Shown one piece after another: positions 3,001-52,399 of a DNA stretch of 64,000 nt. The first letter of the stretch is position 1. Each line of letters begins with the position of its first letter. Under the pieces are notes generated by a model that was not told the origin of the DNA, ran no database searches, and was given only the letters and a program-made list of their open reading frames with translations. Source of the stretch: Selaginella moellendorffii (Eukaryota; Plantae; Lycopodiophyta); NCBI RefSeq assembly GCF_000143415.4, contig NW_003314268.1:201117-265116 (forward strand), written 5' to 3'. The translations under genes and the position numbers were made by a program.

Positions 3001-4447
3001 CTTTAGAAGAAATGGCACGGATTTGATCATCTGCAGTACCTGTCCAAGAACGCACTTGTCAGTTAAAACTTACTATATGTTACCGTCCAAAATCGCTTTC
3101 TCTTCCAGAATGTTTAGCACACGCCTCAAGAATGCGGCCTCCGCATCACGTCCTTTTCCGTCACAGCCAGCGAGCATAATCTCTGCCGCCTGTAATACGA
3201 GATTTCGTAAGTTCCCAAATTGTTTAGCCCAACCTTTCTTGCAGAGAAGAGGCCCAACTCAAAGAGACAGTAGTTCAGAGTGTTGTATATCTTATTTACA
3301 GCTTGCCTTTCTTCTGGAAGTCCAAATTCTCTGGTTAAGTTCTGAAATGTGCAACATGTGTTAAACAATAACAAGCTAATTCTTTCAGTTGACCTCGAAA
3401 CGATTGTCGATGTCCGTTGTACGATGCTTGCCTTTCGTGTCTGGCAAGTACTCCTTGATTTTCATATCAGATGATGGTAAAAAGCTAGTTAGCTCTTCAT
3501 CTGCGAAAGTGATAATCTGTGACAAAAGACCAGCGGGTCCATCAAATGAGACTTTAGATAGACAACAACCTTTGAGCGTAGCATAGTTTCAAGGCAATCA
3601 AAACTTTCTTTGAAAGCTTGTGGACCGCTCCACGTCTTGCCTGTAAATGCAGGTGAGGTTCATGCAGACAACATCCTCGTACCTTTTCCAACAATGGGTG
3701 ACGCCGTCATGCCCAATATTCTCGGACACTTAGCTTCAGGCTTGTGATAAAACTCCTGTGAATGCAGTAACACTATCAGAAAACGAAGCAGAAGAAAGTT
3801 TAAAACCCAGCACTTACGCTCATGATATTCGCATAAGGATGCCCCTTGGCACAGTGATGACATTCGTCAAAAATTAGCAGCTCAACATGATCCGGATTGA
3901 AAAATCGATGGCGAAGGTTGTCCAGCAGAATCGCAGGAGTCATAACAAAAACCTGTAGGCTCCACGCAAGAAGAGTAAAGCCAAAGTTAATAGAAAGAAA
4001 GAACCTCTTGCTTTTGAAGATGCGTTGTCCACCAATGAACATCCATGGTGGAAGTTCCACCGACGTAAGTACCAACGTAAAGGTCAGTGTAGCGCTCAAT
4101 GACCTCGGCTTGCTGCCAACCATATAAAAAGTCGAAAATACTAGCACGATAGAAAGCAAGATGCTAACCTGCTCGCAAAGGCTCACTGTTGGGGCCAAAA
4201 ACACGCAAATCCCTTTCTCTGGCTTGCGAAATAAGTGAGAAAGTGAGCGAATGAGAAGCACAGCGATCATCGTTTTGCCACACCCAGTTTCCAGGCACAC
4301 GATCGTGTTCATTGCCAGTGCTTTCTCGAATAGAAATGTTTGATAGCTAAGAAACAAGATTTTTCAGCTGCATTGATGGGAAATCCATCTTTGTTACCTG
4401 CGCGGATTCGGCTCCTCGCACAATCGCCGTTCTGCGAGCTCGGCCAT
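1..4447 (-). CDS. DCL: Dicer-like endoribonuclease (DExD helicase, helicase C, DUF283, PAZ, RNase IIIa, RNase IIIb); multi-exon, 3' end outside window; resembles DCL2/DCL4 type
   Basis: Exon translations: ETGCGKT Walker A, LLIFDECHH, GMTASP, VATNVAEEGLDIQSC and QSRGRAR (helicase C), YHVESTGA...LLHQYCSTL and ARKAACLEACRKLH (DUF283), YITYSDYF...QPLL...ELPPELC (PAZ), ERLEFLGDSFL and KSVADVMEAIIGA (RNase IIIa), EAFTHAS and RLEYLGDAVL (RNase IIIb). Proposed ATG at 4447 (MAELAERRLCEEPNPR, then GT-AG intron). Confidence 0.95.
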
Positions 4448-4529: not shown

Positions 4530-7500
4530 CTAGAAACTTTTAAAAGCAAAGCATAACGTGAGAAACCCTAATGCCACTCCCACAGGAAGTATTCTCGCAC
4601 GGGCTGGAGCGATCGCCCATGGCAGAGGTAGATTTCTCCTCCTGTTTGCTTCCCGCCGCTCCGGAGCTGGATCTTTCTCCACGGATCGAAGGCGCTCGAT
4701 GATCAGCGGGAAAATGTCGGTGTGGCTGCTCTCCCCGATCCATAGATCCGAATGGCCATAGCTCGTCATCACGAAGCGAGCGTGATCGAAGGTGGGATGG
4801 TGTTTCTTCATGAATTCGTGCGCTTGCTCAGACATTTGTGGTGTTGCCAGGATTGGTTTGCCTCCGGAGATGTAAGTCGTGGGAAGCGCGAGCCTCTCCG
4901 GTTTTGTCATGTAAGTTTCTTGTCCCCTGGCATCTACTATATGGCCAGCTCTCGCGATCTTTCTTAGATGTGGGAAAGCTTGCAGTGGTAGAACGGGTAC
5001 CGCTTGGCTCACAAGCCAGTCGTGCATTTCTTTTCTTACGTTCTCGTGCCAGAATGTGTTGCCAAATATGCCTGAGAAAATGCTGCATTCGTCGCTCACG
5101 CAGCACTCCGTTCGTGGTATCGCTCGAGCTATTGCTCGGATAAGTTTGTGTCTTGTTGGTAGTTTTTGTTCACGCTTCTGATTGGTGATTGGAAGTGTTT
5201 TATGATCTCCCAGAATTTTCATGGATATCTGCGGAAATCTTTGTTAGCTCGTGCACTGATTCTTAAAACTTACAGGTATCAGAGGAAGTGCCATTTTCAC
5301 CAATGCCGCTGGAACCAGGCTGAAAAACATTGACGAGTTTGTGCAGACCAGTGAAGCAACACGAGAGACAGGTAAGTGTCCTCCCATTATGGCCATATGA
5401 ATCAGTAGTCCGCCGATGCAATGCGCAATGACGTGAGCACAAGCTGGGCCATTTTTTGATTGTTCCATTCTTTCAAACGCTGCAAAACTCGTTAGCTGAC
5501 TCTACTTTGCGTGTATGTGATGCAGCTTACCTGCTGGAATGTCAAACTTCGCAATGTCATCAAGATCAAACTTTTCTTGGCCGGGGTGAGATGGGTGAAC
5601 TCTTGTCTGCAACAGCCATACCTCATATCCATTTTGCAGAAGCGTTCGGACCATATCTTGTGGCTCGGTAGGGAGGCAGAAGCTTTCAGTGGAGTAGCCA
5701 TTCAAAAGCAGCACCAGTCCTTTCTTCTGGTCCATGGAAAGTGGCCATTGTTTACAGGTAACTTTTGCTCCATCTTCTGCAAGCAACATCGTACTGTGCA
5801 TTAGGACCGCTTGAAGTAGCATCACCTGTTTTTTGCACTTACTGGTTTGCATCTCATGATGAACATAACTAGGATAGTCGAGTACTTCGTTTTCCGTTCT
5901 GACATTTACTTCGGAAGGTTGATCAATTTGCCGGGGACGTCCAGAAAAGTATGTTTGCAGCAGACTCGATAGCAACTGCTTAAGAAACGAAAATTTCCCT
6001 GGTCCTTTCAAGCTTATCAACGACCTCAGAAGATTGAAGACACTGACGTGCAAAGTTCCCTGGAGTACTGAAGGGTTGGCACTCTCCTTGCCTGAAAGAT
6101 CGACGAGCTGTGCGTTAAGTGTGGTCGATTCCTTATAGATCCAGAGACCGCAGAGGAAGGGCCTCATCTCTTTTTTTGCCATCAACAAGAACCTGCCAGT
6201 CTGCTCGTCACTTTCTGGATTTCTAGGACTTCACTTACCGGCGGCCTGAAGACGTGGATAGAAGCAGATGGTAACGCATAAACTGAGTGAAGGGAGACTT
6301 CTCGCTCAGCGAACACAGGTTGACGTATCCGTCCAAGACATGCAAGGGGTCCTTTTCTAGCAACGGGATGAGCAGCTTTCCTCCTACTTGGCCATGGAGA
6401 ATGGTTGTGCAGTTCGTCGTTTTCGAAACTATATGCATTGTTAGCTTCAACGTGCAAGGTATGCCATCGAAACTTCCGTCGAGTGTCTCATTGACAATAG
6501 TAACTTTGCTGGTTTTCAGTGGCTCGTCCTGGACAGGATGTTCCAAGGAACTCAAGCTTTGCCTTCGCGAGAAGAGGTAATATTTTGCATCCTTTGCTAT
6601 GCAGCTTGATACCTTTTCTGCCACAATTGCTATAGTGCCTACTGGATTGACGCCTATCGAACATGGAATTACCGATGCATCACAGATGTATAAGCCTGCA
6701 TGGACATTCTTGTTGCTCCTTTCATCACTGTTATGAGCGTTGGCTTGATTACTTGCAGGTGGAGCGTAAACCTGTCCACTCGGACTCGTGACCCCGGAAG
6801 TGATGCTCGTCGAAACATTGCAGCCTCCTAGGAGATGCACCGAGTTGCTCCGGAAGCGAGGTAGAAAGAGCTTCCCGTCAAGTTTAGAAGCAATCTTCTT
6901 AACTCGTTCGAGTTTTTTGCAGAAGAGCAAGTCACTGGATGCCTGGTACGTGATTTTTCCAGATTTCTCGTTCAAGGTAACGTGTCCATCCCCGGAGTCA
7001 TAGCTTATCAAATTAAGTTGAAGTTCCTGAATGTTCTGTCTAGTTATCCACTGCATGAACTGGTCCCAAAGAGCATGAATGATTCCCCAGCTGACTGGCC
7101 ACCTGTTTATGAGGATTCCTTTCAAGATTACGTAGGAACTTGCTTTCGGGATTGCTGAAGCCTATGGTCGTAGAAGTTAGAGCTTTGATGCATTGCGAAA
7201 TGTTACCTGAATGGTGAAGCCGAGAGAGGAGGTGTGCGAGCTGGAAATAGATGGGCCTGGTCTTAGTGGGAGCGGCGTGCTTGGAAACTTTTCCTTTCCT
7301 AGTCCGCGTACTTGAGTTTGTGCAGAGGCTTCTGTTACGAATGCAATGTTGTTTCCATTGCAACTGACTCCTCTCCCCAGCTTTTCTGAAAGTTGCAAGC
7401 CTCGCTCTTTTGATCTGAGCAAGATCCCAGTCGTTCCTAAAACACCAGCTGAGAAAGAAGAAGGCAGATGAAAGTCAGCAACCTCTGGAGTGTCAAGTTT

Positions 7501-8452
7501 TTCTTACCGGATAACACGACGTAATCTGCTGAGATGTAGTCCACTGAGTTTTCATGAACTCGCCATCTCCTGCTTTGAGCCTTGCCAAAGGGAGCCTGGA
7601 AGTGGCTGCTTGTAGCTTTTGGACTTTGGCTTACGAACAGGACTTCTCTCTCGGTGTAGATTTGAGCTCCTGCCTGCAAAAGTTTTGTTTTTTGCTCTAC
7701 CAAAAACTAAACTTTTTGGCTTCGACATACCTGTGCAGCGAGCTGGATATAATTCTTGTCAGTGGAGCTCTTGGCGTTGTAAGAGCATCCTGTTAAACAG
7801 TTCCCACAGGCAACGCAGGCATCCTGTGCTGCTCCAGCGACACTTTTCTTACTCGAGAATGTCATGGTAAGCTTCACTGGAACTCTAGACATGTCTTCGA
7901 TATCTTCTACAAGCTTATCCATGATCTGTGTCTTAGGAAAGTCGTGGGGCACACTCTCGGGCTGCAAGATCTCTTGTGCCTTCGCCTCAAACTCGTCCCA
8001 GTCTCTGTCCCACTCTTCCGGCCAGCGCGGATCACGGCGAGCTCTTCGAGGCGTCGGCATGATCACTCCAGCGTTCACCAGAGATCCGCCTCCAAGCCCA
8101 GACGCTGTCACGGCGAGTGAATCTCCATCAACATACACCTGAGAACATTAACAACATCAAAGGTGAGTGAGAGGTCTTTCTTCTTTCAAGCTTTGCTCGC
8201 CTCGTATAACGAGTTCTTCCTTCCAAAGCTGCCGAATCCAGTGTGGAAGCGCATGGTGGAAAGAAGCTGCCACACATTCGTTGGAAAATCCCGAGGCTCC
8301 CATCGCTTGCCTTTCTCCAAAACGCAGACGCTCAAACCAGCTTGAGCGAGCCGGCACGCAGCGATGGCTCCGCCATAGCCAGAGCCCACCACTACAACAT
8401 CGAAGGTGCGAGGCGGAGAAGCCATCTCAAAACGATACCGCGTTCTTCTCAT
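4530..8452 (-). CDS. GMC oxidoreductase (cholesterol oxidase-like) fused to alpha/beta-hydrolase with C-terminal TM helix, copy 1; multi-exon
   Basis: VVVGSGYGG FAD dinucleotide motif, GLGGGSLVNAG, CVACGNCLTGC, HLLGGC, GVNP. Hydrolase half: LLLLNGY, VIAHCIGG, YGHSDL. Hydrophobic tail ILPVGVALGFLTLCFAF. GT-AG introns link the exons. Confidence 0.9.
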
Positions 8453-8629
8453 TTGCTTGAAAGCTATTTTATAGGAGCTCTCGCATGTTGGAGTTTATGA
8501 GAAGAACAAACGACCTTGCTTGAATCATTCTTGTCTTTGTGAAAAGAACAAACGTCAATATTCAATCTTGGTCCTGTTCACAAGGAATTTTCTTTTTATC
8601 TCCTTTCTCAAGCATTTTTGGCGGGAATT

Positions 8630-11600
8630 TCAAATTCTAGAGCTAGGGTTTATCAGGGCAAGCAAGCACAGCATGGCGATCGCGAGCAGCGCCATCAGGA
8701 TGGCCACGGCGCTCCTCCCAGCGGCTTTCTTGTGGCCGGCCAGTGGCTCCTCCCACGGCAATATCGCGTTCTTCTGCAGATTATCGCTCGGATCGCTCCG
8801 CTCGGCGGATTTTAGGCGTTCCAGCACCAGCGGGAACACGTCCTCGTGCGAATGCTCTCCGATCCACAGGTCAGAGTGTCCGTAATCTGGAATCACGACT
8901 CGAGCGTGGCTGAATCCAGGGTGATGCCGCTTCATGAATCCGTGCGCGCGGAGAGAGGTCTCTGGAGTGACGAGAATGGGGCGGCCGCCGGAGATATACG
9001 TGGTGTGGACTGCTAGCCTCTCCGGATGAGCCATGTAAGTCTCCTCTTCTCCTTCACTGTCGACTATGTGTCCCGCTAGAGCGATTGATCGCAAATGTGG
9101 AAATCCTGCCATTGGAAGAACTGGCACTGCCTTCTTGTTCAGCCAGTCGTGCATTTCTAGCCCGACGTTTTGGTGCCAGAATGTGCTGCCGAAAATTCCT
9201 GAGAAAACATTGCATTCATCGCAGGGACAGCTTTCAGTGCGTGGTATCGCTCGAGCGATTGAGCGCAGTAGTCTGTGTCGCCACGGCATTGATTCTTCTT
9301 TAGGAGGACTTATCGGCACGATGGTGTTCTTTCCCAGGATTTTCATAGAAATCTGTAGAAAAACGTAGAGATGTAATTCTCAGTTGGTAGATGGCTAACG
9401 CAAAAAACTACTTACAGGGATGAGAGGCAGAGTCAACTTCACGAGCGCTGATGGAACCAAGTTGAAGAACATGGACGAGTTTGTGCAAACTAGCGATGCG
9501 ATCGACGATGGAGGTATGTGTCCACCCATCAAGCTCATGTGAATTGATAGTCCTCCTATGCAGTGAGCAATAACGTGTGCCGCTATCTGCTTTTTCTTGA
9601 CTTGGTTTATCTTCGCAAACGCTGCAAATTTTAGCGATTAAAATTTTCCTCCTTGAAAAAACAGGAACATACCAGATGGAATGTCGAAGTGAGCAATATC
9701 GTCGAAAGTGAAGGAATATTTTGCTGGATGCAGTGGATGCAAACGTGTTTGCAGCAGCCAAGGTTCGTAATCATTCTGTATCAGCGTTCGTATGATGTCA
9801 TTACTTTCCGTAGGAAGGCAGAAGCTCTCCGTGGAGTAACCATTGAGCAACAAAACCACTCTGGAGTTGTGGCTCTCCGCAGCATCTTTTGAGCACCATT
9901 GCTTGCAGGTAATGTGGACACCGTCCTCTACAGCCATCCATCATGCTTGTGTCAGAATGACTGCCTGTTAAGAAATTTGTTTCGTACCTGTCACGAGTTC
10001 GTGAAGCACGTAGTTTGGATAGTTGTTTGTCAAGTTTTGTTTCCTGGTCACCTTCTCTGTTGGTGTCCTTGGTGTTCTCATCAAGTACGTCCTAGCAAGT
10101 GTTTCCATCAGCCGTCCTACAAACTCCCGCTTCCTTGGTCCTCGCAAGGATATTAGCGACTTAAGTAACTCGGGAAGAGTTACTCGCAACTTTCCTTTCA
10201 GGACAACCGGTTTTGATGACTCCTGCTGAGTTCGAACAACGACATGTAGCGTGGTCGACTCATAGAAGCACTTTAAGCCGCTCATGAATGGTCTCATCTC
10301 TTTCCGTCCGTCCAAAGTATACCTTCACAAACCATAGCATGTTTTGCATGAGACCAGACCAGATTTAGAGGAGGAAGGAAAACTTACCTGGTGCCCGTGT
10401 TTGTTGACAGAAGCAGGTGATAATGCATATACTGAGTGAAAGGAGTTTTTCCATCGACATGGCACATATTTACGTATCCGTCAACCACATATAGAGGACC
10501 TGGTTCCAGCGAAGGAATAAGAACATCGCCTCCAACATATCCACGCAGGAGAGGATGACTATCTCCAAACAAACGATTGCTTGCAGGCGTATCTTTGTCT
10601 TGTCCCATATGCATCACCAGTCGCAGTGTGCAAGGAGCTCCTCCAATATTTCCTTTCAATTTTTCGTGGATAATGACATAGCTGCACTGCATTTCGGAAG
10701 CAAGTCGCGAGTTGAGGTATGTTCTTGATTTTAAATTACTAAGATCGCCAGTAAATACTTTGTGCTGAAACTTTTGTGACAGGTAGTTCTGCGCATCGTT
10801 GACAATGCCATTCGCAACTCTCTCTGCCACTATTGAGATCGTGCTGACCGGATTCAGTCCAACTGAGCATGGAATCAAAGAGGCGTCGCAAACGTACAGG
10901 CCTGCGTGAACTTTTGTTGTCTTCCTGAACTGACCGTTGCTCGTCTCAGGGAAGAAAATCTGGCCGTTTGCGTTTGCCACGCCGGTGGATGAGTCTGTTG
11001 CTGCGTTGCAACCTCCCAAAAGATGAACGGCAGCACTTCTGAAGCGACTCATGTACAGCTTCCCACGAAGGCGAGCTGCCAACTTTTCAGCGGTCCGAAG
11101 CTTATGATGAAAAAGTAAGTCCTTCGCTGCACTGTATGCCACTCTTCCTGTTACCTTGTCTAGCTTGATTTGCCCGTCAGCAGCGTCATATCCCATCATA
11201 TTCAATACCAGAGCTTGGCTGTTCTGCGTTCCTGTCCATTGTTTGACTTGTTCCCAGATACCAGTGAGAAACCCGTAGTCCCCTAGGCCATAAGTAATGA
11301 CTCCCCTTAGTAGAAATTCTGGAGCAGCTTGAGGAATACAAGAGCCCTGAAAGAGGTGTTTAGCTTGATATAAGCTTATTTCACTCATATTACCTGTATT
11401 GTAAAGCCAAGTGATGATGTATGTGAACTTGATATGACTGGACCAGGACGTAGCTGCATGGGAGTCCTTGAGAAATCTTCTTCTCGAAGTCCTTGAGCTT
11501 GAGTCTGTGCGGCTGTGCCTGTTATGTAAGCTATATTATTTCCATTGCAGCTAACTCCGTATCCCAACTGTTGGGACAGTTGTAGGCCTCGCTCTTTTGA

Positions 11601-12648
11601 TCGTAAGAGGATCCCATTCGTGCCAAGAACACCAGCTGAAGAAAGAAGGGGCAGCAAATATTAGCAACGAAAGTTTCGAGCTTCTACAAGATAGTACCGG
11701 CTACGATGATGTAGTCTGCCGAAATATAATCCACTTCATTCAGGTGCACACGCCATCTTCTTGTAGCTACTGATTTGCAATTTGCTCCATCATTGCAGGG
11801 TTGACAACAGAATTCTTCTGAGTTCTCGGTGATGAACATCACTTCCGTCTGCGTGCAAATTCTGGCTCCGGCCTGCACATGCGATTTCCGTAAGAAGATG
11901 TGCCTTCATATTTGGCTGGAAAAGTACCTGTGCGGCTAGTTCGAGGTAATTTTTGTCTGTTGAGCTCTTTGCGTTGTACCTGCATCCTGATAGACAGTTA
12001 CCGCATGAAATGCATTCGTTTTGTGTAACTCCAGCAGCATTCTTCTTCTGATTGAAACTTATTGTCAACTTCATGGAATCTCTTGCTGCGTCCTCTATCT
12101 CGTTTGCAATTTTGTCTAGCACTTTTGATTTTGGAGCCTCGTGCAGGATTTCTTCAGGCTCCAGAATGCTGTGAGATTTTGCTTCGTATAGATCCCAGTC
12201 TTCCTGCCACTCGCTTGGCCAGTTTGGATGCATTCGTGCTCTTTTCGGTGTGGGCACGATAATTCCAGCATTCACTAGCGAGCCTCCTCCCAGTCCTGAC
12301 CCAACTAGAGCGACAGAGTCTCCGTGGCTGTGCACCTGTAAACATGGACTAACTGTGTGTATATATGTTTTAACAGGAGAAGTACAATGCTATCCAGTAA
12401 CTCACCTCATAGAGTGCATCCTTCTTCCCAATGCTTCCAAATGGAGTAAGAAAACGCGTGCTGGAAAGCAATTTCCAGGGCGTTGCTGGAAACTGGTGAG
12501 GCTCCCATCGTCTTCCTTTCTCGAGAATGCACACACGGATTCCTGCTTCTGCGAGTCGATATGCAGCAATCGATCCTCCATAGCCAGATCCAACAACAAC
12601 CGCGTCGTACCCGACTTGGATGGTACGTTCCACTTGCGTTTGAGACAT
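8630..12648 (-). CDS. GMC oxidoreductase (cholesterol oxidase-like)-alpha/beta-hydrolase fusion, copy 2; multi-exon
   Basis: Same motifs and exon structure as copy 1 (GSGYGG, GLGGGSLVNAG, CISCGNCLSGC, HLLGGC, GLNP, AHCIGG, YGHSDL, tail AVAILMALLAIAMLCLLAL). ATG MSQTQ at 12648. Confidence 0.9.
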
Positions 12649-13582
12649 AACTCGTCTCACTTTTGTTCTCCCCTCTTTGTTCTCCCCTCTTACAGAAATT
12701 CACCCTCGTCGAGATGTTCTAGGGACAAAGAACTGCCTATCAAGGTACCATCCTTCAGCACAACACGCATACAAATTTGACGTTGAATTTGTTTCGTTTA
12801 CTTTTTTATTTTTTGGTAGACTTTAACATCCTCACTTTAATATGATTAGCACTAGTCCTTACTATATTGTTAGGATCGGACTCACTCCTTTAAAGAAAAA
12901 AAATTAAGATTGAGGAGAAAGTGAGAAATAAAGTGGAAGAGAAAAAAAAAATAGCAATTGTTAAAAGGAAATAAGAAAAAAAAATTGCTCAAACTTTTTG
13001 TTATAAAAAAAACACAAAAATCCTATATAACAAGGCTTATAAAATACTTTGGCAAAAATTAAAGAGATTGGTTAAACCTTGTTGATACTAAACTATGGGA
13101 AGATAAGTGGACTTTTAAGACTGTTCATTCATGAAGGAAAAAAAAAAACTCCTCAACAACAATAGTAAAATAAAAATTCTTAATTGCTAAACCACTAGTC
13201 AACATGCATTGCTATCATCCGAGTCAAAAAAATGAGCTAGAAAAACTCACTATACTCCAGTGGCGACAAACTCCAGCACTAACTGGCAAGTGCAGCTAAT
13301 GATAAGTCTAACATGCTCTCTCTTGTTCTAATTGAGGTATGGAGACATTGGATTGGTTTGACAAGCACCACCACTTGATGCAGCCATATAGTGGTCATAA
13401 GTTCCCAAATAGCATGGAATTGGAAGCACACAAAAGGGTTTAAAGGATGCTCTTTCTTAGCTAACAATGTAATAGTTTCAGATGATGGGGCTTGCTCTCA
13501 CGGACAGTGTAATGGAGCAGTGCATCCTCCCTGATTTGTTTGCATCAAATCACAAGTTGTGATCACCATTGTACTGGCAGAT

Positions 13583-16500
13583 TCAAGGGTTTACCAAGCA
13601 GAGCAAGGCGATCGCGAGCAGCGCCATCAGGATGAAGACAACGCCGCCGCACGCGCCATTCCTACCAGCGATCAGCGACTCCTCCCACGGCAGTATCGCA
13701 TTCTTCTGGAGGTTATCGCTCGGATGGCTTCTCCCGGCGGATTTGAGGCGCTCCAGCACCAGCGGGAACACGTCCCCGTGCGAATGCTCTCCGATCCACA
13801 GGTCGGAGTGTCCGTAGTCTTGAATCACGATTCGAGCGTGGCTGAGTCCAGGGTGATGCCGCTTCATGAATCCGTGCGCGCGGAGAGAGGTCTCTGGAGT
13901 GACGAGAATGGGGCGGCCGCCGGAGATATACGTGGTGTGGACTGCTAGCCTCTCCGGATGAGCCATGTAAGTCTCGTTTTTCCCCTCGTTGTCTACTACG
14001 TGTCCCGCGAGAACGATTTTACGTGCGTGTGGCAATGCTGCCATTGATAGAGTTTGCACTGCCTGCTTGGTCAACCAGTTGTGCGTTTCCAGTCTGACTT
14101 TCTCGTGCCAGAATGTGTTGCCGAATATTCCTGAGAAAACATTGCATTCGTCACAGTGGCAGCGCTCCGTGCGTGGTATCGCTCGAGCAATTGCGCGGAG
14201 TAGCTTGTGTCGCCACGACATCGGTTCTTCTTGCGGAGGACTTATTGGTATGACGAGCTTCTTTCCCAGGATTGTCATAGAAATCTGTAGTAGATAAACA
14301 ACAAGACGTAAGTCTCCTTTTTTTTATGGCTAACGCAAAAACTACTTACAGGAATGAGAGGCAGAGTCAACTTGACGAGCGCTGATGGAACCAAGTTGAA
14401 GAACATGGACGAGTTTGTGCAAATCAGTGATGCTATCGACGATGGAGGTATGTATCCACCCATCAAGCTCATGTGAATTGAGAGTCCCCCCATGCAATGA
14501 GCAATAACGTGTGCTGCTACCGGCTTTCTCTTGACGTGGCTCATCTTTGCAAATGCTGTAAAATTTTCCAGCATTAAACTTTCTCGGTTTTTGACAGAGT
14601 GCACATACCGGCTGGAATGTCGAACCGAGCGACATCATCGAAAGTGAAAGAAGTTGGGGTCGGATGCGATGGATGGAAACGTGTTTGCAAGAGCCAAGGT
14701 TCATAGTCATTCTCTATAAGTGTTCTTACGATGTCGTGGTTTTCCGTAGGGACACAGAAACTCTCTGTGGCATAACCATTGAGAAGCAAAACAATTTTGA
14801 AGTTCTCATCTTGAGCAGCACCCTTCGAGCACCATTGCTTGCAGGTAATGCGGGCACCATCTCCTGCACAAGAAATCTGTCACTGCCTGCGTAAAAGAGT
14901 CAAGTCTGTTTTTACCTGTGGCAATCTCATGAAGCACATAGCTTGGATAGTTTTCGGTCGAGTCTTCTGGTTTTGCCATTTCCCGGCTTGTCGCTCTCGG
15001 TGTTCTCATCAAGTACGTCCTAGCAAGTGTTTCCAGGAGTCGTCCTACAAACTCCCGCTTCCTTGGCCCTCGTAACAATATTAGGGACTTAAGTAACTCG
15101 GGAAGAGTTACCCGCACTTTTCCTTTCAAGGCAATCGGTCTTGGTGAGTCCTGCTGAGCTCGAAACAACGATATGTAGTGTGGTTGCATCAGAGTAACAC
15201 ATTAGGCCGCTCATGAATGGTCGCATCTCTTTCCTTCCGTCCAAGGTATACCTTCAGAAACCATAGTTTTCAATGAGATCAGATTGACAGAAGAAAGGAT
15301 AACTTACCTGGTGCCTGTGTTTGTTGACAGAAGCAGGTGATAATGCATATACTGAGTGAAAGGAGTTCTTTCATCGACATGGCACATATCTACGTATCCG
15401 TCAACCACATAAAGTGGGCCTGGTTCCAGCGAAGGAATAAGAACATCGCCTCCAACATATCCACGCAGCAGGGGGTGACTATCTCCAAATGTGAGATTAC
15501 ATGCAGCCCTATCCTTGTCTTGTCCCATATGCATCACCAATCGCAGCGTGCAAGGAGCTCCTCCAATATTTCCTGCCAGTTTTTCGTGGATAATGACGTG
15601 GCTGCTCTCAAGCCGCGAGTTGAGGTATGTCCTTGACTTGAAATCACTGAGATCGCCAGTCAATACCTCGTGCTGAATATTTTTTGACAGGTAGTTGTGT
15701 GCGTCGTGGACAATTCCATTCGCAACTCTCTCTGCAACTATAGAGATGGTGCTGACCGGATTCAATCCAACGGAGCATGGAATCAAAGAGGCATCGCAGA
15801 CGTAGAGGCCAGAATGAACTTTCGTTGGCTGATTCAACTGATATTTGTTCTTCTCAGGGAAGAAAACCTGGCCGCTTGCGTTTGTCACGCCAGTGGATGA
15901 GTCTGGTGCTGCGTTGCAACCTCCCAAAAGATGAACTGTAACACTTCTGAAGCGACTCATGTATAGCTTCCCACGAAGGCGGGCTGCCAACCTTTCAGCG
16001 GTCCGAAGCTTCTGGTGAAAAAGTAAGTCCTTCGCTGCACTGTATTCCAGTCTTCCTGTTGCCTTGTCTAGCTTGATTTGCCCGTCAGCAGCGTCATATC
16101 CCATCATATTCAGGACTAGAGCTTGGCTGTTTTGCATTCCTGTCCATTGCTTGATGTGTTCCCATATACCAACAAGGAATCCGTAGTCATGCTGGCCATA
16201 AGTAATCACTCCCCTCAGTAAAGTCTCGGGAGTTGCTCGAGGAATAGAGGATCCCTGTAAGAGTGTTTAGCTTAAGTGTTTTCAAGGTAATATTACCTGT
16301 ATGGTAAAACCAAGTGATGATGTGTGTGAACTTGATATGACTGGTCCAGGACGTAGCTGCATGGGAGTCCTTGAGAACTCATTTTCTCTTAGTCCTCGAG
16401 CTTGAGTTTGTGCAGCTGTGCCTGTTATGTAAGCGATATTATTTCCATTGGAGCTAACTCCGTGCCCCAACTGTTGGGACAGTTGTAGGCCTCGCTCTTT

Positions 16501-17537
16501 TGATCTCAGGAGGATCTCGTTCGTGCCAAGAACACCAGCTGAAGTAGAAAAGGGATGTTAGCGACGAAAGATCAAAGCGTTTACAGGGTGGTACCAGCTA
16601 GAATGACGTAGTCTGCTGAAATATAATTCACTTCATTCAGGTACACACGCCACCTTCTAGTAACTACTGATTTGCAATTTGCTTCGTGATTGCAGGGTTG
16701 ACAATTAAATTCTTCTGCGTGGCTAGAGGTATCCAAGATGAACATCACTTCCGTCTGCGTGCAAATTCTGGCTCCGGCCTGCACATACGATTTCCGTAAG
16801 AAGATGTGCCTTCAGTTTTCGCTGGAAAAGTACCTGTGCGGCTAGTTCGAGGTAATTTTTGTCTGTTGAGCTCTTTGCATTGTACCTGCATCCTGATAGA
16901 CAGTTACCGCATGAAATACATTCCTTTTGTGTAACTCCAGCAGCATTCTTCCTCTGTTTGAAACTTATTGTCAACTTCATGGAATCTTTTGCTGCATCTT
17001 CGATCTCGTTTGCAATTTGGTCTAGCACTTTGGACTTTGGCGGCTCATTCTGAGCATATTCCGGCTCCAGAATGCTGTGGGATTGTGCTTCATATTTCTC
17101 CCAGTCTTCCTCCCACTCGCTTGGCCATTTTGGATGCTTTCGTGCTCTTTTCGGTGTGGGCATTATAATGCCAGCATTCACTAGTGAGCCTCCTCCCAGT
17201 CCTGAGCCAACTAGTGCGATCGAGTCTCCGTTGCTGTGCACCTGCAAAAATGGACTAACTGTGTCATGTGTTTGAACACAATGCGGTGACTCACCTCATA
17301 AAGAGCATTCCTCTTTCCTATTCTTCCAAACGGAGTGAAAAATCGCATATTGGAAATCAGCTGCCATGGCGTTGCTGGAAACTCGTGAGGATCCCATCGT
17401 CTTCCCTTTTCTAGAACACACACACGGAGCCCCGCTTTTGCAAGTCGATAGGCAGCAATTGATCCTCCGTAGCCCGATCCAACAACAACAGCATCGTATC
17501 CGACTTTGATGGTACACTCAGCTTGTGTTTGAGACAT
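13583..17537 (-). pseudogene. GMC oxidoreductase-alpha/beta-hydrolase fusion, copy 3, with +1 frameshift at about 15164 (pseudogene, truncated oxidase-only product, or assembly error)
   Basis: All motifs of copies 1-2 are present (AHCMGG here). It has GTTGTTTCGAGCTCAG where copy 2 has GTTGTTCGAACTCAG, i.e. one extra T, which gives TAA at 15091-15089. Confidence 0.8.
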
Positions 17538-22970: not shown

Positions 22971-24215
22971 TTAAATGCCTCGTTGCTCAACATTAAATAC
23001 CTGAACTGGTTTGATAAAGCTAGCTCGCCGACTAGGCTGTAGAACTAGAGTAATCTCTATGGCTTTCCTCGTAACCTCCTCATTTGCCTCGCGTTCATTT
23101 CTCTGCCCCCATATGAGCAAGTATAAGCCGAAGATAATCGTGAGCCCTCCCACCAGAGTTCCCAATCGCAAGCTTTCCTTCAAGAAGAAATAGCTTAGAC
23201 ACGCCGTGATAATAGTTTCCAGTGGTTGATACGCTGCCACTACCACCGGGCCTCCTTCTTTCACCGCCCACGATTGAATCCCTGATACAATCCCCGATCC
23301 AATTACTCCTGCGTAGACGATGCTCAGAGCTTCCCCGAGTTTGATGTTCGTCCACAAGCTCCACTGTGGCTCAAACGCCGCTCCAACCACCGGGAGCTGG
23401 ATCACACTCGAGAGGCACGACATGGAAGCGAAAGTTACTGGAGCTGGGAAAGATTTGAGTACTGGAGCCTGGAGGATGAGAAAGAGCGCAAAAGAGAGGC
23501 CCGATAGGAGGAGAAAGATTGCTCCCAGATGCCATGAAACCATCTTATAGTGGACCTCGCCAGTGAAGAAGTAGAGTACATGGCTCTCCACAATGTTGGA
23601 GACGATCGCCGACGAGCCTTGATCATCCTTGGTGTGGAAGACTGCGAATTTGCCCTCGAGAACAACGGGACCTCTGTAGATCGACAAGATGATTGAACCA
23701 ACAAGACCGATCAGCGCTCCCGAGAGCTTGGCGATGCCATGCCTTTGTCTCAAGTCAATCTTTTCCAGCTTGAAGAAACACGCAAGAACAAACGTCATTA
23801 TAGGGATGCAGTTGCGGATGGTCGATGTAACCATGACCGACGTCAAACCCAGGCCGACCAGGTAACAAAGCTGGTTCATCGTCACCCCCAAGAACCCTAG
23901 GAAAAAGAAGTAGAAAACCTCCTTGAAAGTGAGCTTCCTCCAGTTCTTGCGCTCGAAGATGATTCCAGAGATTCCCAACACGATGGTGGCGAGACAATTC
24001 CTGTAAAACGTGAACGCCGTCTTTCCCACGCCTTGGTCGAGAGCTACTCGGCTCAAAACTTCGAATCCAGCAAAGAGAGCTTGTGTTGTGCCAAGTGAGA
24101 GATAGAGCCTCAACTTTCCAGCACAATTTTGTAGAGAAGAATTATCGTTATTCATACTCCTTCGATCGTTGATGTCTATGCGTAACTCTTGTGGTGTTGT
24201 ACAAACCACAGCCAT
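22971..24215 (-). CDS. WAT1-related / UMAMIT (MtN21, EamA-like) transporter, intronless, copy 1
   Basis: 414-aa ORF with about 10 hydrophobic helices. Motifs YRNCLAT, FFLGFLGVTMNQ, IPIMTF, AKLSGALIG, YAGVIGSG, GPVVVAAYQPL, GLYLLIWG. Confidence 0.93.
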   Translation of the reverse strand: MAVVCTTPQELRIDINDRRSMNNDNSSLQNCAGKLRLYLSLGTTQALFAGFEVLSRVALDQGVGKTAFTFYRNCLATIVLGISGIIFERKNWRKLTFKEVFYFFFLGFLGVTMNQLCYLVGLGLTSVMVTSTIRNCIPIMTFVLACFFKLEKIDLRQRHGIAKLSGALIGLVGSIILSIYRGPVVLEGKFAVFHTKDDQGSSAIVSNIVESHVLYFFTGEVHYKMVSWHLGAIFLLLSGLSFALFLILQAPVLKSFPAPVTFASMSCLSSVIQLPVVGAAFEPQWSLWTNIKLGEALSIVYAGVIGSGIVSGIQSWAVKEGGPVVVAAYQPLETIITACLSYFFLKESLRLGTLVGGLTIIFGLYLLIWGQRNEREANEEVTRKAIEITLVLQPSRRASFIKPVQVFNVEQRGI

Positions 24216-30233: not shown

Positions 30234-33200
30234 TCATTCCCTCCTCTCAGAATAATGGAAGACCATTAGAGTTCTCTTGTAGATGGGCTGGGATCTAGAG
30301 GAACGTCAGGAGGAGGCATCGATGGATCTATAGATGGTATTAACTGCTCTTGATCCCTTTGTATGAAGTGTTTCAACTGCTACACATGCACAATCTCTGG
30401 AGGATCGATCTATTGGATGTCATGCCAAACTTCATAAACTTGTGGTCTAACTTGCCGCAACACCCGATACAATCCTTTCCACTGTGCAAAGAGCCCCTTA
30501 GATAAACCACGTACTGTAAGATGGGGAAAATGAACTAACACCAAATCATCCACTTTGTACTTTGTAAATGGACGATGATGGGAGTTGTAACACCGTTGTT
30601 GTCCCACTTGTGTGCGGCCTAAGTGTTCAATAGACTCTGCTTGGACAAATGGAAGAATGCTCAACACGACGATGTTTTATATGCCCACCTAGAATAGGAG
30701 AATCATGGTAGGCATGAAGAAACAGTGGAATAAAGACAGAAGGCACAACTAACCGTAAATGATCATCAAGATCTGTCCTCACAAAATAAAGAAGGCCATT
30801 TTCAAGGCGATATTGAGAATGTAAATGCCGAAAAGGCAAGTCATCAGCAAATGATGTAGAATTCTCAAACCCATCTCGAAGCCTTCGAATCCACGACTCA
30901 ATCTTTTGAGCTTCGCGAACCTCATCAAGAGAAGGTAAATCTTCCTCTGCGCCTTGTGGACACTAAACATCAAGTACAACAACTGTTGATGGCACAGAAT
31001 CCTCGTCTAAAAAATCCACAGATGTTGGAACAATAGGCTCATCAGAAACATGAGAAGGGAGTGGAGAAGGAAGAGGAGCTCAAGAAAGGCCATCAGCATC
31101 AACCATAGAACTCCCTGGGCGATGAACAACATCAAAATCATATATCTGAAGCTTCAAAGCCCACTGAGCAGTACGACCAACCAGGTTCTTCCGCTTTAAT
31201 AATGAAGTAACAGCATGGTTACCTTCAAGTAACGTCTGAGAACCATATAGATATACATGAAGTTTCTCGAAACCCCAAATTGCTGCTAAACACTCTTTCT
31301 TTGTCATGAAGTAGTTCATCTCCGCTAGTTGTAATGTACGGCTTATATATGCAATGGGATGGTGCTGGCCAGGCACACTCGAGCTCTCTTGCATCAACAC
31401 ACCTTCAAGACCAATGTCAGAAGCATCCACGCGCAAAATAAAAGGTCGAGTGTAGTTAGGAAATGCCAAAACTAAAGGAGTCGTCAATAGCTCTTTGAGA
31501 TCCACGAACACCCGCTCACAATCTGGAGACCAGATGAAAGATGACGTTGATGACTTCAGCAACACTCGCAACGGTGCAGTGTGATCAGAAAGATGATCCA
31601 CAAAACGACCAAGATACTGCACCTTGCCCAAGAAGTGTTGCACATCATTCACACACTTCAGAGTAGGGAACTTTAGAACAGCCACAAGTTTGTCAGGATC
31701 AACTTACAAACCCTCATGAGAAATACGGTACCCAAGATAAGTTGTGTCCTTGGACCCAAACACGCACTTCGACTAGTTCAGCTTTAAACCAACATTATGT
31801 AGCTGATCCAACACTTTACAAACATCACGAACGTGCTCCTCCCACGTCCCCTCCGAGTGGATCAAGATATCATCAATGAAATCAGCCGTCACCTCCGGCA
31901 TATCACAAAGAACCTCGTCCATCATCCACTAGAAAGTTGCTAGAGCATTGTTCAAATCAAACAGCATCACTAAGAACTTATACAAACCAAATAGTATACG
32001 AAAAGTAGTCTTAGGAATATCTTTTTCGGCCATTGGTAGTTACTAGTACCCAACAACAAGATTTGGTGAACTAACAACTTCGCCCCAGACAATCCAAGAG
32101 ATTAGCAATGTCAGAAAGAGGGTACATATCTGGGATCGTCACTTCATTTAATGGATGATAGTCGATGCAAAAACGAATACTCCCATCAAGCTTCGTCACC
32201 AGATGAGGTTCACATGCTCAAGGATTCTGTGACTTTCAAATAACACCCTTTTCTAATATCTTCTTGACATTTGCATTTAAAATCTTAATCTTTTTTAGGT
32301 GACCGATAATGAATAGGAACCTTGATTGGACGAGCATCCCCAGTTGGAATCGGATAACATGTGGCAATCTTAGCCTTAGATGATAGGTCAAAGTCAAAGA
32401 GATCGGCATACTCCTTCATGAACCGATCAACCATTGCAACACAAAGACTGTTGGAGGGATTGGAAAAGGGAAGAGTGGAACAAGACAAAAACATAGAAGG
32501 AAATAATGGGGAGACAAAAGTAATGGAAGTAGAGGTAGAAGTAAAGGGACGAAAAGGTATAAAAGTGAGAGGAATTAATGAAACATAAGGAAGTATGAGA
32601 CAAGGGGGAGAAGCTTCAAAGTCACACTTGGCATGATTGCGCTAAAACAAATCCATACCAAGAATGAAGTCAAAAGTTTGACTCGACACCACCCGCAATG
32701 ATTGCAACTCAAGCTCGAAATCACCCACACGCACAACCAAGTCCGCCTCATCTCATGCATATGCATGTGTACGGCCGTTGCCATAAAGAATGAAAATTGG
32801 TTCTACCACATAACGCAAGTATAGATGGCAACGTGTGGCAACAGGTCGAGCAATAGAAGATTCAAATCTGTATCAACCAACATGGAGAGAATAATAGGAG
32901 ACCTCTTGTTATAAAAACGAGCTTGGAAAGTAAAAACTAAATGAATCGGTGCCAAATGAACCCCTTGATGATACTCCCGAAAGAAAGATGGAAGGGTCAT
33001 TGACTTATTTGCGCAAGGTCCCTCAATTACTCATGCGACTTCGTGTTTCCCAAATGCATCTCAGTGTCCAAACCTTCCACTACAACAGCATTAACGGGAC
33101 ATTGCTGATGCCAAAATCTCCACCTAGGAAATGGAGGTTGCCAATCCGGAAAATGCCAACAACGCCAATAAGTATGACCAACTTCATTACATGCCCAATA

Positions 33201-35096: not shown

Positions 35097-36341
35097 TTAA
35101 ATGCCTCGTTGCTCAACATCAAATACCTGAGCTGGTTTGATAAAGCTAGCTCGCCGACTAGGCTGTAGAACTAGAGTAATCTCTGTGGCTTTCCTCGTAA
35201 CCTCCTCATTTGCCTCGCGTTCCTTTCTCTGCCCCCATATGAGCAAGTATAAGCCGAAGATAATCGTGAGCCCTCCCACCAGAGTTCCCAATCGCAAGCT
35301 TTCCTTCAAGAAAAAATAGCTTAGACACGCCGTGATAATAGTTTCCAGTGGTTGATACGCTGCCACTACCACCGGGCCTCCTTCTTTCACCGCCCACGAT
35401 TGAATCCCTGATACAATCCCCGATCCAATTACTCCTGCGTAGACGATGCTCAGAGCTTCCCCGAGTTTGATGTTCGTCCACAAGCTCCACTGTGGCTCAA
35501 ACGCCGCTCCAACAACCGGGAGCTGGATCACACTCGAGAGGCACGACATGGAAGCGAAAGTTACTGGAGCTGGGAAAGATTTGAGTACTGGAGCCTGGAG
35601 GATGAGAAAGAGCGCAAAAGAGAGGCCCGATAGGAGGAGAAAGATTGCTCCCAGATGCCATGAAACCATCTTATAGTGGAGCTCGCCAGTGAAGAGGTGG
35701 AGTACATGGCTCTCCACAATGTTGGAGACGATCGCCGACGAGCCTTGATCATCCTTGGTGTGGAAGACTGCGAATTTGCCCTCAAGAACCACGGGACCTT
35801 TGTAGATCGACAAGATGATTGAACCAACAAGACCGATCAGCGCTCCCGAGAGCTTGGCGATGCCATGCCTTTGTCTCAAGTCAACCTTTTCCAGCTTGAA
35901 GAAACACGCAAGAACAAACGTCATTATAGGGATGCAGTTGCGGATGGCAGATGTAACCATGACCGACGTCAAACCCAGGCCGACCAGGTAACAAAGCTGG
36001 TTCATCGTCACCCCCAAGAACCCTAGGAAAAAGAAGTAGAAAACCTCCTTGAAAGTGAGCTTCCTCCAGTTCTTGCGCTCGAAGATGATTCCAGAGATTC
36101 CCAACACGATGGTGGCGAGACAATTCCTGTAAAACGTGAACGCCGTCTTTCCCACGCCTTGGTCGAGAGCTACTCGGCTCAAAACTTCGAATCCAGCAAA
36201 GAGAGCTTGTGTTGCGCCAAGTGAGAGATAGAGCCTCAACTTTCCAGCACAATTTTGTAGAGAAGAATTATCGTTATTCATACTCCTTTGATCGTTGATG
36301 TCTATGCGTAACTCTTGTGGTGTTGTAGAAAACACAGCCAT
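35097..36341 (-). CDS. WAT1-related / UMAMIT (MtN21, EamA-like) transporter, intronless, copy 2
   Basis: 414-aa ORF nearly identical to 22971-24215. Confidence 0.93.
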   Translation of the reverse strand: MAVFSTTPQELRIDINDQRSMNNDNSSLQNCAGKLRLYLSLGATQALFAGFEVLSRVALDQGVGKTAFTFYRNCLATIVLGISGIIFERKNWRKLTFKEVFYFFFLGFLGVTMNQLCYLVGLGLTSVMVTSAIRNCIPIMTFVLACFFKLEKVDLRQRHGIAKLSGALIGLVGSIILSIYKGPVVLEGKFAVFHTKDDQGSSAIVSNIVESHVLHLFTGELHYKMVSWHLGAIFLLLSGLSFALFLILQAPVLKSFPAPVTFASMSCLSSVIQLPVVGAAFEPQWSLWTNIKLGEALSIVYAGVIGSGIVSGIQSWAVKEGGPVVVAAYQPLETIITACLSYFFLKESLRLGTLVGGLTIIFGLYLLIWGQRKEREANEEVTRKATEITLVLQPSRRASFIKPAQVFDVEQRGI

Positions 36342-36849: not shown

Positions 36850-39800
36850 CTAAAAGTTTTCCTTTTGAAAGTCAAACTTGGTGATGTTATGGTGGCTGTA
36901 TTCCTTGCATAGCGCATCCAATTCCTTGCCAAGAGCCGGGGCTCCACAGTAAAACACACCTGAAAATTTTGTCACGTTTTAGCAAAGAAAAGCTCACAAA
37001 CATACCAATTCTCGCGCCTCTGTGCAGCTTCTCCAGCCTCGACAGAACCTTTCTCCAGTTTGGACGGGCAAAGTGAGTCTTAACCTGGCCAAAGATGAAG
37101 AACACATATAAGAGAACTAGAAACACGAAGAAATTCAAGGAAAGAGGCTAGAAAAGTACCCGAGTTCCCGAAATAATATCGACACCATTCCGTGCATGCT
37201 GTAGACTTTGCACCATCGTAATCAGGGCCGATCGAACATCGCCCTCTTCGTAAACACTCGTCAAATAGTTATGTAGCTCGATAACAGCCTGAGAAAGCAT
37301 CGTAAGAACGTGTAAGAATGGAAACATCATACGAAAACTTCCAACCTTGGAGTCAATCTCGGCAACTTCGTTCATGACACCTTTGAACCAGTCGAAAGAT
37401 CCTTGCTCTCGTGTAACCCAGTAGAAGTAAGCGTTCGTGGGAGTCCAGCCGGGGACCGTGGAGTTCCCTGGACTTCTTCTAGGGCTGGGCATTGGGATCC
37501 TCACGTCGGCGCTCGTCTCGTTCTTCTTCATGTTGTTGAGCATGTCTTTGAGAACACTGATGAAGGGAGTGGCTCCAATGCCCAGGCCGACGAGAAGGAG
37601 AATGTCGTAGGAGGTGTAGTCCTGCGATGGAGCTCCGTAAGGCCCATCGATGAAGAGCTTTGGAAAGCTGCGAAGGATTGGATCATAGATTAGTCCTTGC
37701 GGCTCTCTCTAAAGGAAAAGTAAAGATGGCTTACTTTGAGCTCTCCCCGGAGTTCCATGCCTCGGCACGCAGCAATCCACTCTTGCCACCAGCGGATGGT
37801 TCGCAAATTTGCGAGAACACGTTCTTAAGTTCTGCCGTCCAGTCACCGAGAGTTCTGATGTGAACGCTGAGATACTCGTCGCCTGGAGCGGAAGTGATTG
37901 AGAATGGATGCCTGTAACACGATCACATAGACAAGTTCTTGAGAATCATTATAAAAAAAATGGGAAAAAAATGTGAAAGAAGCTCACCACTCAAATGGAG
38001 AGACTGCTGGACAGTTCAAGACCATGTACATTCCACTCTTGTACCGAAAGTTTGGAGGCTTGGTCATGTACAAAGCCATGACGTTGCCAGAGTAGATAGC
38101 CACCTGAAGAGTTTGACAAAAAGGAACCAGATTTTCAATCTCCATGCAAACAACGGTGGTGAAGTTCTACCTTTACGACTTTCACCGGATAAACCGTAGA
38201 CTTGAAAACCCTGCGAATCCTTTCAAACGCATAGAGAAGGACAGGTATCGCAACATACATCCAAGTCTGTGTTTGAAAGAAAAAAGTAAGAACGTGAACT
38301 TGGAGCAAGAAGATCTTACAGTTTTTTGCTGCCATTTGTAAGTCAGGTAGAGGAAGATGCCGTGGATGATGAGGAGCACGTAGACGATGATGAAGAGGTG
38401 ATGTGTGTACCAAAACGTGTTGAATCCCGTCATCCGGTGGAAAGGCCACGGGAACTTGACGAGATTTCGCCGAAACTTGTGAGTTGCGAGTGTGAAAGCT
38501 ATGGCCATGAGAACCACCATGACAATCCCCGTCACTCCCTCCACGCCCTTGACAACCTCCCAGTAAGTTGGCTGCCTATAGTTGAATCCACGCCCGATCT
38601 TCGCGATGAATTCCTCCTCGTCGTAGCTCACAAGCCTCGGGATATCGCAAGTTATATGCATTCCTCCGTGGAGAAGAACACCCACGACGATTCCAGCCGC
38701 TATAGTCTGCTCGAAGGGAGAAAACGTGTAAACATCAGGAAAACAGCTAGCTAGAACTTTACCTTGTGAAAGTTGATATTGTCGTTGAAAGGCACGACCT
38801 GGTTGAGCCAAGTCGATCTCAAGTACGTGAGAAAGTTCCGACACATTGGAAACAAAATCAAAGCCATGTTGAGCTTGAGAGTCTCGGCGGCACCTTTGGC
38901 GATGCACAGACAATATCCCATGACATCAAACGCGGCCTTGTTCCGGTACTGGACGAACTTCCAGGTGAAAAGCCCGACGCACGCAGCGATCCACAGCGCC
39001 AGCACCCAAATCCTCTTCCAGTTCTCGGCCAGGAAATACTTGGTCTTGGACTTGATCTCGTGCAAGCGGTCCCGTCTGTGTGGTGGAACCAGTGCTTGAC
39101 TTAGCATCTGGCTTACGTTTTGTGTGGAGTATCGCTGCGAGGCACCGACAATCTCACCACGTAGGAGAGTTTCAAGCTGCCATAGCTGCCAAGAAAGTGA
39201 CACAAAGTCTAGAGTGAGCGAGTGATTTGGTCGTGAGCTTAACGAGAGTCAAAGATGGATGGCAAACCTCGACATAACCCAGATTGTCCGGGTCTAATTC
39301 TTCCATGATCAGCGCCGCGTACTCGTCGGCTTGCTCCTTGAGTTTCGAGAGCTTGTTCTCACTCGCGCTTATTTTAATGACCTGGACAAAGAAATTTTTC
39401 GCGATCGTTAGTCAGCGTCGTCGTAGCAAGCAATAGTGGAACAAAAGAATAGAAATTTTTTCGTTAGTCAGCGTCGTCGTAGAAAAGCAATAGTGAAACA
39501 AAAGAATGGAAGAAAGCTTGCCTCTTTCACTTCTTCTTCCGTAATCCTTCCGTCGGAATTTTTGTCGCACCTGTGCAAAACCGTTGAGTTGAAAGAACAG
39601 GAAAATTGAGATTTTTACGTACATGTCGAAGAAGATTTCGAGCCTGGAATCGAAGCTCGGGTCGGAGATCCAGAACCAAAACTCGCGAGCCTGGTCTTTA
39701 TCGATTTTGAGCCGGTTCACGTCCATTTTGCGGGCTAGGCAATCGAACAACTGTCCCGCAAACTCCTTTGAATCTTTCATACCTGTAGATCCAAGACAAA

Positions 39801-52300: not shown

Positions 52301-52399
52301 GCCAAAGCAATACCACCCATAAATTTTCAATTATTCTCAAACTAACTTTTCTATATTTCTCAAATTTTTTTTTAAAATGATATTCTAGAGAAATTTAGT

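Follow-up and report, generated by a model that had tools for sequence, protein, structure and literature searches.

Tandem genes in Selaginella moellendorffii encode fusions of a GMC flavin domain and a Cys-type acid-lipase-like hydrolase with a predicted tail anchor

The proteins encoded by a tandem gene array in Selaginella moellendorffii (contig NW_003314268.1, positions 201,117 to 265,116; this 64,000-nucleotide stretch is referred to as the window) join domains that can each be compared with a described enzyme. Class I cholesterol oxidases (Streptomyces ChoA, Brevibacterium; PDB 1b4v, 1coy) share with them a flavin adenine dinucleotide (FAD) Rossmann motif, the N- and C-terminal GMC domains, and a His/Asn pair. 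The iron-sulfur (Fe-S) GMC dehydrogenases of the BcGDH type carry a His/Asn pair and a Cys-rich loop that, judged from a weak sequence match, appears to agree in spacing and in its place in the GMC fold. Acid lipases (human lysosomal, 6v7n; gastric, 1hlg and 1k8q) are 13–17% identical to the hydrolase of the window proteins. The polyhydroxyalkanoate (PHA) synthase PhaC (9knj, 5xav) resembles this hydrolase in its alpha/beta-hydrolase fold, its Cys nucleophile followed by x-G-G, and its thioester chemistry. Plant FAO and HOTHEAD are likewise GMC flavoenzymes that act on lipid alcohols; however, they are single-domain proteins and were the closest relatives in none of the searches. The FAO names found on some family members appear to be annotation carry-over. 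Compared with cholesterol oxidases, the window proteins add a four-Cys loop, a beta-barrel, a hydrolase, and a predicted tail anchor, and they lack a secretion signal. We found no description of a protein that combines a GMC domain bearing an Fe-S-type loop with a barrel, an acid-lipase-like domain of the Cys type, and a predicted tail anchor. We propose, with a rough probability of 0.45, that these proteins are two-step lipid-ester enzymes in which an ester is opened on the lipase-like Cys, the alcohol is handed over by the barrel and oxidised at the FAD, and the electrons leave through the Cys loop.

Three head-to-tail genes of nine exons each, here called g1, g2, and g3, occupy positions 4530–17537 on the minus strand, as do all features of the array given below. 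The original prediction, made from the DNA letters, had placed three tandem intron-containing genes at this position. It is borne out by the open reading frame (ORF) list, in which the motifs picked out earlier recur in three series of exon-sized pieces, and by spliced nine-exon models. These models come from a script-made spliced alignment of the window to a database homologue, P0001 (S. moellendorffii LOC112350638), followed by a check of the splice sites. Every motif listed in the prediction (GSGYGG, GLGGGSLVNAG, CxxCGNCxxGC, HLLGGC, and G(V/L)NP) and the hydrophobic C-terminal tail are found in all three genes, and so are the Cys elbow AHC(I/M)GG and GHSD. The predicted domain order also stands. 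Pfam and NCBIfam models recognise the flavin fold, and the predicted structure shows a beta-rich middle domain and a hydrolase before the tail. The middle gene, g2 (8630..12648), is intact and encodes 1181 amino acids (aa). It corresponds to the RefSeq ‘uncharacterized protein LOC112345107’ (P0165), which has the same length as the g2 model and is 100% identical to it in the three translated exons that were compared (2, 5, and 9). An intact but divergent copy, g1 (4530..8452), encodes 1163 aa, and g3 (13583..17537) has the same nine-exon layout with the frame of exon 6 broken by one extra T. P0165 and its paralogue P0001 served as full-length stand-ins for the window proteins in the searches described here, and window exons were searched singly. 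The sequence itself is not new, since the family is widespread and RefSeq already lists genes of it under uncharacterised proteins.

The flavin domain belongs to the GMC oxidoreductase superfamily, with an N-terminal GxGxxG motif and matches to Pfam GMC_oxred_N and GMC_oxred_C above the gathering score. Window exons 2 and 5 score 33.7 and 28.1 bits, and a close relative, P0003, scores 44.2 bits with GMC_oxred_N (cut-off 23) and 39.5 bits with GMC_oxred_C (cut-off 24.6). The FAD-binding GSGYGG of the Rossmann fold lies at 12574..12591 in g2, 8369–8386 in g1, and 17463–17480 in g3. In g2, the GMC catalytic pair falls within 10849..11025, with the His in HLLGGC (11008–11025) and the Asn in GLNP (10849–10860). 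The corresponding His and Asn motifs are at 6820–6837 and 6643–6654 in g1 and at 15916–15933 and 15757–15768 in g3. That this pair is of the cholesterol oxidase type, as had been claimed, is upheld by 34 aligned sequences from plants, protists, and bacteria, in which H467 (HLLGGC) is nearly invariant and N524 (G(V/L)NP) invariant; the Asn segment aligns with the C-terminus of ChoA. The nearest solved structures in a PDB sequence search are class I cholesterol oxidases (E 4e-20), with cellobiose dehydrogenases far behind.

One alternative, close to the original prediction, is that the proteins are true 3-beta-hydroxysterol oxidases. The hydrolase would then free a sterol, the flavin domain would make the 4-en-3-one and pass electrons to O2 to give H2O2, and the Cys loop would be structural only. 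Such an activity would suit the standing of class I cholesterol oxidases as the closest solved and curated relatives, the conserved His/Asn pair, and the best structural match of the hydrolase, lysosomal acid lipase, which is a cholesteryl-ester hydrolase. However, the best NCBIfam model, the cholesterol oxidase equivalog, reaches 157.3 bits against a cut-off of 850 (P0165 residues 1–560), and its match spans the FAD-binding parts and leaves out the substrate domain. By its sequence, the domain is therefore cholesterol-oxidase-like and not assignable as a cholesterol oxidase, and, given the same low score, it may or may not be specific for sterols. Cholesterol oxidases use an isomerisation base, Glu361 in the Streptomyces enzyme, that could not be aligned here. 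Moreover, characterised cholesterol oxidases lack the four-Cys loop, which is invariant in the aligned members of this family and apparently in register with known Fe-S ligands. A sterol oxidase is thus an unlikely description of the window proteins.

The loop, CxxCGNCxxGC, is a candidate Fe-S site and lies at 11982..12014 in g2, 7785–7817 in g1, and 16888–16920 in g3. The original prediction listed this motif and assigned it no role. Across the 32 sequences of an alignment that includes bacteria (A5), none of the four Cys varies. Fer4 Pfam matches in the window exons are sub-threshold, and a profile of the loop region matches 4Fe-4S ferredoxin modules with E values of 3e-5 to 1e-3. The absence of the loop from characterised cholesterol oxidases is read from the same kind of profile, whose alignments to these enzymes in the PDB start only after it. 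A weak match (E 0.08) pairs profile positions 29–124 with residues 211–301 of 6a2u_B, an Fe-S GMC dehydrogenase of the BcGDH type, and brings the loop into register with residues 211–222. If the start of this alignment is ungapped, profile Cys 30, 36, and 40 correspond to Cys212, Cys218, and Cys222 of 6a2u, and positions 41 and 44 to Pro223 and Ala226. In the Burkholderia FAD-glucose dehydrogenase, Cys212, Cys218, and Cys222 bind a 3Fe-4S cluster through which electrons from FAD reach a partner, and Pro223 and Ala226 are also named (PMC6719666).

Given its coordinate register with known ligands and the invariance of its Cys, the loop is best read as an Fe-S site. The same evidence casts doubt on the earlier assumption that H2O2 is released; by analogy with BcGDH, the flavin domain may pass electrons to an acceptor, as a dehydrogenase, rather than make H2O2. 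The window proteins differ from BcGDH in having a fourth Cys, and the sequence match is weak. BcGDH is a periplasmic sugar dehydrogenase, whereas the window protein is probably a cytosol-facing lipid enzyme. Enzymes of the BcGDH type are marked by three Cys ligands in a loop ahead of the conserved AK/DK..Y segment. They also have a small hitchhiker subunit and a multihaem cytochrome c, and no such partner is expected for a eukaryotic tail-anchored protein.

Downstream of the flavin domain, the middle domain of g2 (9988..10780; residues ~548–790; the end of exon 5 and exon 6) is predicted to form an 8-stranded up-and-down beta-barrel followed by helices. This fold comes from an AlphaFold2 model of the paralogue P0001 (predicted local distance difference test score, pLDDT, 83.6) and from fold searches. 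The barrel and hydrolase half of the protein gave no match to the PDB by sequence and none to NCBIfam.

Exons 7–9 of g2 encode an acid-lipase-like alpha/beta hydrolase (8750..9927) with the motifs LLLNGY (9836–9853), AHCIGG (9551–9568), and GHSD (8870–8881). The Cys elbow is at 5409–5426 in g1 and 14485–14502 in g3. In structure comparisons, the modelled hydrolase resembles lysosomal acid lipase best. It has the alpha/beta core and cap domain of the gastric and lysosomal acid lipase family, and it lacks the family’s Ser nucleophile (G-x-S-x-G) and the Asp after strand beta7. Thus, unlike acid lipases, the window hydrolase has Cys for Ser in the elbow and no conserved Asp, and it is part of a fusion rather than a secreted or lysosomal protein. 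Pfam Abhydro_lipase was not matched in scans of the window exons and relatives. The Cys nucleophile, part of the original prediction, proves to be a trait of the whole family and not a local oddity. The elbow (V/I)AHC(V/I/A)GG is present in every aligned plant member, and the Cys is also found in most bacterial fusions and in stand-alone Streptomyces homologues of ~375 aa. The His of GH.D is conserved. These Cys-nucleophile acid-lipase-like hydrolases form a clade of their own, with stand-alone members in Streptomyces, and are of interest in their own right.

Two further explanations turn on this hydrolase. It could be a PHA-synthase-like acyltransferase that makes or remodels polyesters through a thioester intermediate. 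The GMC domain would then oxidise omega-hydroxy fatty acids, as HOTHEAD does, and the enzyme would act on hydroxy-acid polyesters of the cutin or suberin type, which are characteristic of land plants. The hydrolase cannot be placed in the PhaC family by its sequence or by a Cys-Asp-His triad, and we consider this explanation distinctly unlikely. Alternatively, the domain may be non-catalytic and serve as a lipid-binding or membrane-docking module that presents the substrate, with alcohol oxidation as the one reaction. Bacterial proteins offer some grounds for such a role: Gly takes the place of the nucleophile in three of the 12 aligned bacterial fusions (P0065, P0108, and P0058), and other proteins have a GMC domain and a barrel with no hydrolase at all. 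The alignment shows no conserved acid at the canonical position after beta7, which we equate with the gastric-lipase Asp as an assumption. However, Cys and His are kept together in all aligned plants, most bacterial fusions, and the stand-alone homologues, the pattern expected under selection for catalysis. A purely non-catalytic hydrolase domain is thus quite improbable.

A hydrophobic C-terminal tail, predicted to be a tail anchor, is encoded at 8633..8728 in g2, 4533–4628 in g1, and 13586–13681 in g3. The tail proposed earlier is not confined to this locus. A hydropathy survey shows that almost every full-length plant member ends in ~20 strongly hydrophobic residues (mean Kyte-Doolittle value of 2–3 over 19 residues), and that none of the bacterial members does. 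The last ~30 residues hold one hydrophobic segment, and no signal is present at the N-terminus. As the N-terminus leads directly into the Rossmann fold, which begins at residue ~14, a tail-anchored, cytosol-facing topology is the natural reading.

Together, these features are consistent with the two-step lipid-ester enzyme proposed above. It would be a single polypeptide that faces the cytosol and is tethered by its C-terminal anchor to a membrane or to the surface of a lipid droplet. In the first step, the acid-lipase-like Cys-His pair would attack the acyl ester of a neutral lipid, with steryl esters, wax esters, or similar lipids as candidate substrates, to form an acyl-thioester. The acyl group would be released by water or passed to an acceptor. 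In the second step, the freed lipid alcohol would be oxidised at the FAD of the GMC domain by the His/Asn pair. Placed between the catalytic domains, the 8-stranded barrel probably serves to bind the hydrophobic substrate or to pass it on. Electrons from FAD would probably reach an external acceptor through an Fe-S cluster seated in the CxxCGNCxxGC loop, as they do in the Fe-S GMC dehydrogenases of bacteria; in that case, the enzyme would act as a dehydrogenase and not as an oxidase that forms H2O2. The gene structures, domain folds, conserved residues, one-transcript architecture, and taxonomic spread are observed here, and the substrate, the coupling of the two steps, the Fe-S cluster, and the membrane topology are inferred.

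Several observations weigh against this proposal. On the flavin side, besides the low score with the curated cholesterol oxidase model, the substrate-binding part of the domain is not alignable by sequence to cholesterol oxidases. The correspondence between the loop Cys and the Fe-S ligands of 6a2u is read from start coordinates at E 0.08, not from a residue-by-residue alignment. On the hydrolase side, there is the missing conserved acid, and the three bacterial fusions with Gly for Cys imply that the two activities are not always coupled. Moreover, two bacterial gene neighbourhoods hold no pathway partners, save a second tandem copy in one bacterium.

A bolder version of the proposal makes the family the first eukaryotic Fe-S GMC dehydrogenases. 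These enzymes would strip the acyl group, oxidise the alcohol, and deliver electrons to a membrane acceptor and not to oxygen, in a route of H2O2-free neutral-lipid turnover that predates the land-plant radiation. This version is doubtful. To our knowledge, the Fe-S GMC cofactor arrangement occurs in bacterial sugar dehydrogenase complexes only; if the Cys loop binds Fe-S, this arrangement would extend to eukaryotes. If the two catalytic domains act in sequence, the family would add a new step to the turnover of steryl or wax esters in plants.

The family is present in more than 100 land plants from liverworts to angiosperms, including Marchantia, ferns, Ginkgo, conifers, and many angiosperm families, as found in a word search with P0001. 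Plant members are 43–49% identical to P0001 over the full length. Database names assigned automatically include ‘Cholesterol oxidase’, ‘uncharacterized protein’, ‘Long-chain-alcohol oxidase’, and ‘4Fe-4S ferredoxin-type domain-containing protein’. The original prediction knew of no biochemically characterised plant member, and literature searches likewise found none; they returned nothing relevant on any characterised member or on a report of horizontal gene transfer. We found no experimental study of this ~1,180-residue protein, which is shared by liverworts and many angiosperms. Brassicaceae, grasses, legumes, and Solanaceae are not represented among the 120 best matches, and no further search for them was made. 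Their absence from these matches may be the reason that the family has escaped notice in model-plant genetics.

In bacteria, the fusion also occurs but lacks the tail. An unrooted tree built from the exon-5 region by a quick maximum-likelihood method has a long branch (Shimodaira-Hasegawa-like approximate likelihood ratio test, SH-aLRT, 99) that splits land plants and one eukaryotic transcript from bacteria and the protist Diphylleia. The branching among plants agrees with that of the species. A bacterial origin, also raised in the original prediction, may date from before the land-plant radiation, which a tree without a root cannot demonstrate. Tandem pairs seem to arise repeatedly in the family, judging from adjacent gene numbers in Ricinus, Taraxacum, Adiantum, Marchantia paleacea, Coptis, and Salvia. 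The original prediction had taken the triplication as pointing to a specialised sterol/lipid or defence pathway. That part is not supported, because the family is shared by so many land plants and its tree matches that of the species. The family appears instead to serve an old, conserved function and to have been duplicated in tandem time after time, and the array is neither a lineage-specific defence novelty nor a sign of a Selaginella-specific pathway.

Tandem duplication of the family is not restricted to plants, since the bacterial contig JBFONE010000043.1 (GCA_040961615.1) carries two fusion genes 2.5 kb apart, at 8001–11555 and 14120–17521 of the stretch examined. This pair adjoins a TonB-dependent receptor.

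Transcript data agree with the placement of oxidase and hydrolase in one polypeptide. RNA reads were examined for g2 alone. In stranded S. moellendorffii reads, sense coverage of g2 is low and runs along the whole gene, and CT..AC joints mark four of its eight introns, those that follow exons 1, 2, 4, and 8. Annotations in more than 100 plant species likewise show a single polypeptide, and family members occur as full-length ORFs on ~4-kb Logan contigs, which are taken to be intron-free transcripts. On these three grounds, and as far as the data reach, the oxidase and hydrolase are not separate transcripts.

The stranded reads also reveal a spliced antisense RNA on the plus strand across g2 (8600..12695), with at least nine GT..AG joints (8866>8917, 9034>9418, 9511>9562, 9760>9812, 9905>10408, 10714>10781, 10893>10950, 11114>11580, and 12621>12695). 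When these joints are joined in a script, the longest open stretch is at most 121 codons. This multi-exon RNA spanning all of g2 is therefore probably a non-coding natural antisense RNA.

The three copies differ in age and condition. The exons of g2 are at 12648–12406, 12335–11928, 11872–11698, 11635–11394, 11346–10388, 10322–9988, 9927–9673, 9621–9416, and 9352–8630, and those of g3 at 17537–17295, 17241–16834, 16778–16595, 16538–16297, 16254–15308, 15251–14916, 14863–14609, 14555–14350, and 14284–13583. These two genes share 84% DNA identity over 4 kb, introns included. The sole lesion in g3 is a T-run in exon 6 (15164..15166) that, in an alignment of the two genes, is one base longer than its g2 counterpart and makes the exon 336 nucleotides long instead of 335. 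As assembled, the frame stops at codon 729, before the hydrolase is reached; with the extra base ignored, g3 has an open frame of 1173 aa with all motifs present. Either g3 is a pseudogene of very recent origin, or the assembly is in error here.

The exons of g1 are at 8452–8201, 8138–7731, 7673–7508, 7448–7207, 7161–6239, 6192–5843, 5776–5531, 5479–5274, and 5228–4530. Here, the match to g2 and g3 is confined to exons at ~65% DNA identity, and exon 5 is 43% identical to that of g2. In the exon-5 tree, the long branch of g1 arises from a basal polytomy, g2 coincides with P0165, and g3 pairs with P0001. The g1 gene is an old, divergent copy. It may be unannotated or mis-modelled in RefSeq, since no g1-like protein is among the database matches. 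Introns are short in all three genes (42–70 nucleotides) and all GT-AG except intron 1 of g1 (8139–8200), which is GC-AG with the donor GCGAGC. P0001 is 97–99% identical to g2 in exons 1–2, whereas in exon 5 the identity falls to 84% with g2 and is 87% with g3. Such a mosaic suggests gene conversion, either among the copies of the array or between two loci of the genome.

Within the window, the array is not embedded in a lipid-pathway cluster, and its neighbours are unrelated genes. A DEAD/ResIII helicase exon (3800–4357) lies just downstream of g1. Farther away are a respiratory-burst NADPH oxidase (RBOH) gene at 38182–40719, with NADPH_Ox and Ferric_reduct pieces, and a PP2C phosphatase at 42554–43123. 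Two 414-aa ORFs for EamA-type transporters lie 12 kb apart on the minus strand, at 22971–24215 and 35097–36341, with a retroelement RNase H fragment between them (31080–31685). The EamA pair looks like a recent segmental duplication. Positions 50001–58000 of the window have a G+C content of 27–31%, compared with 42–50% elsewhere.

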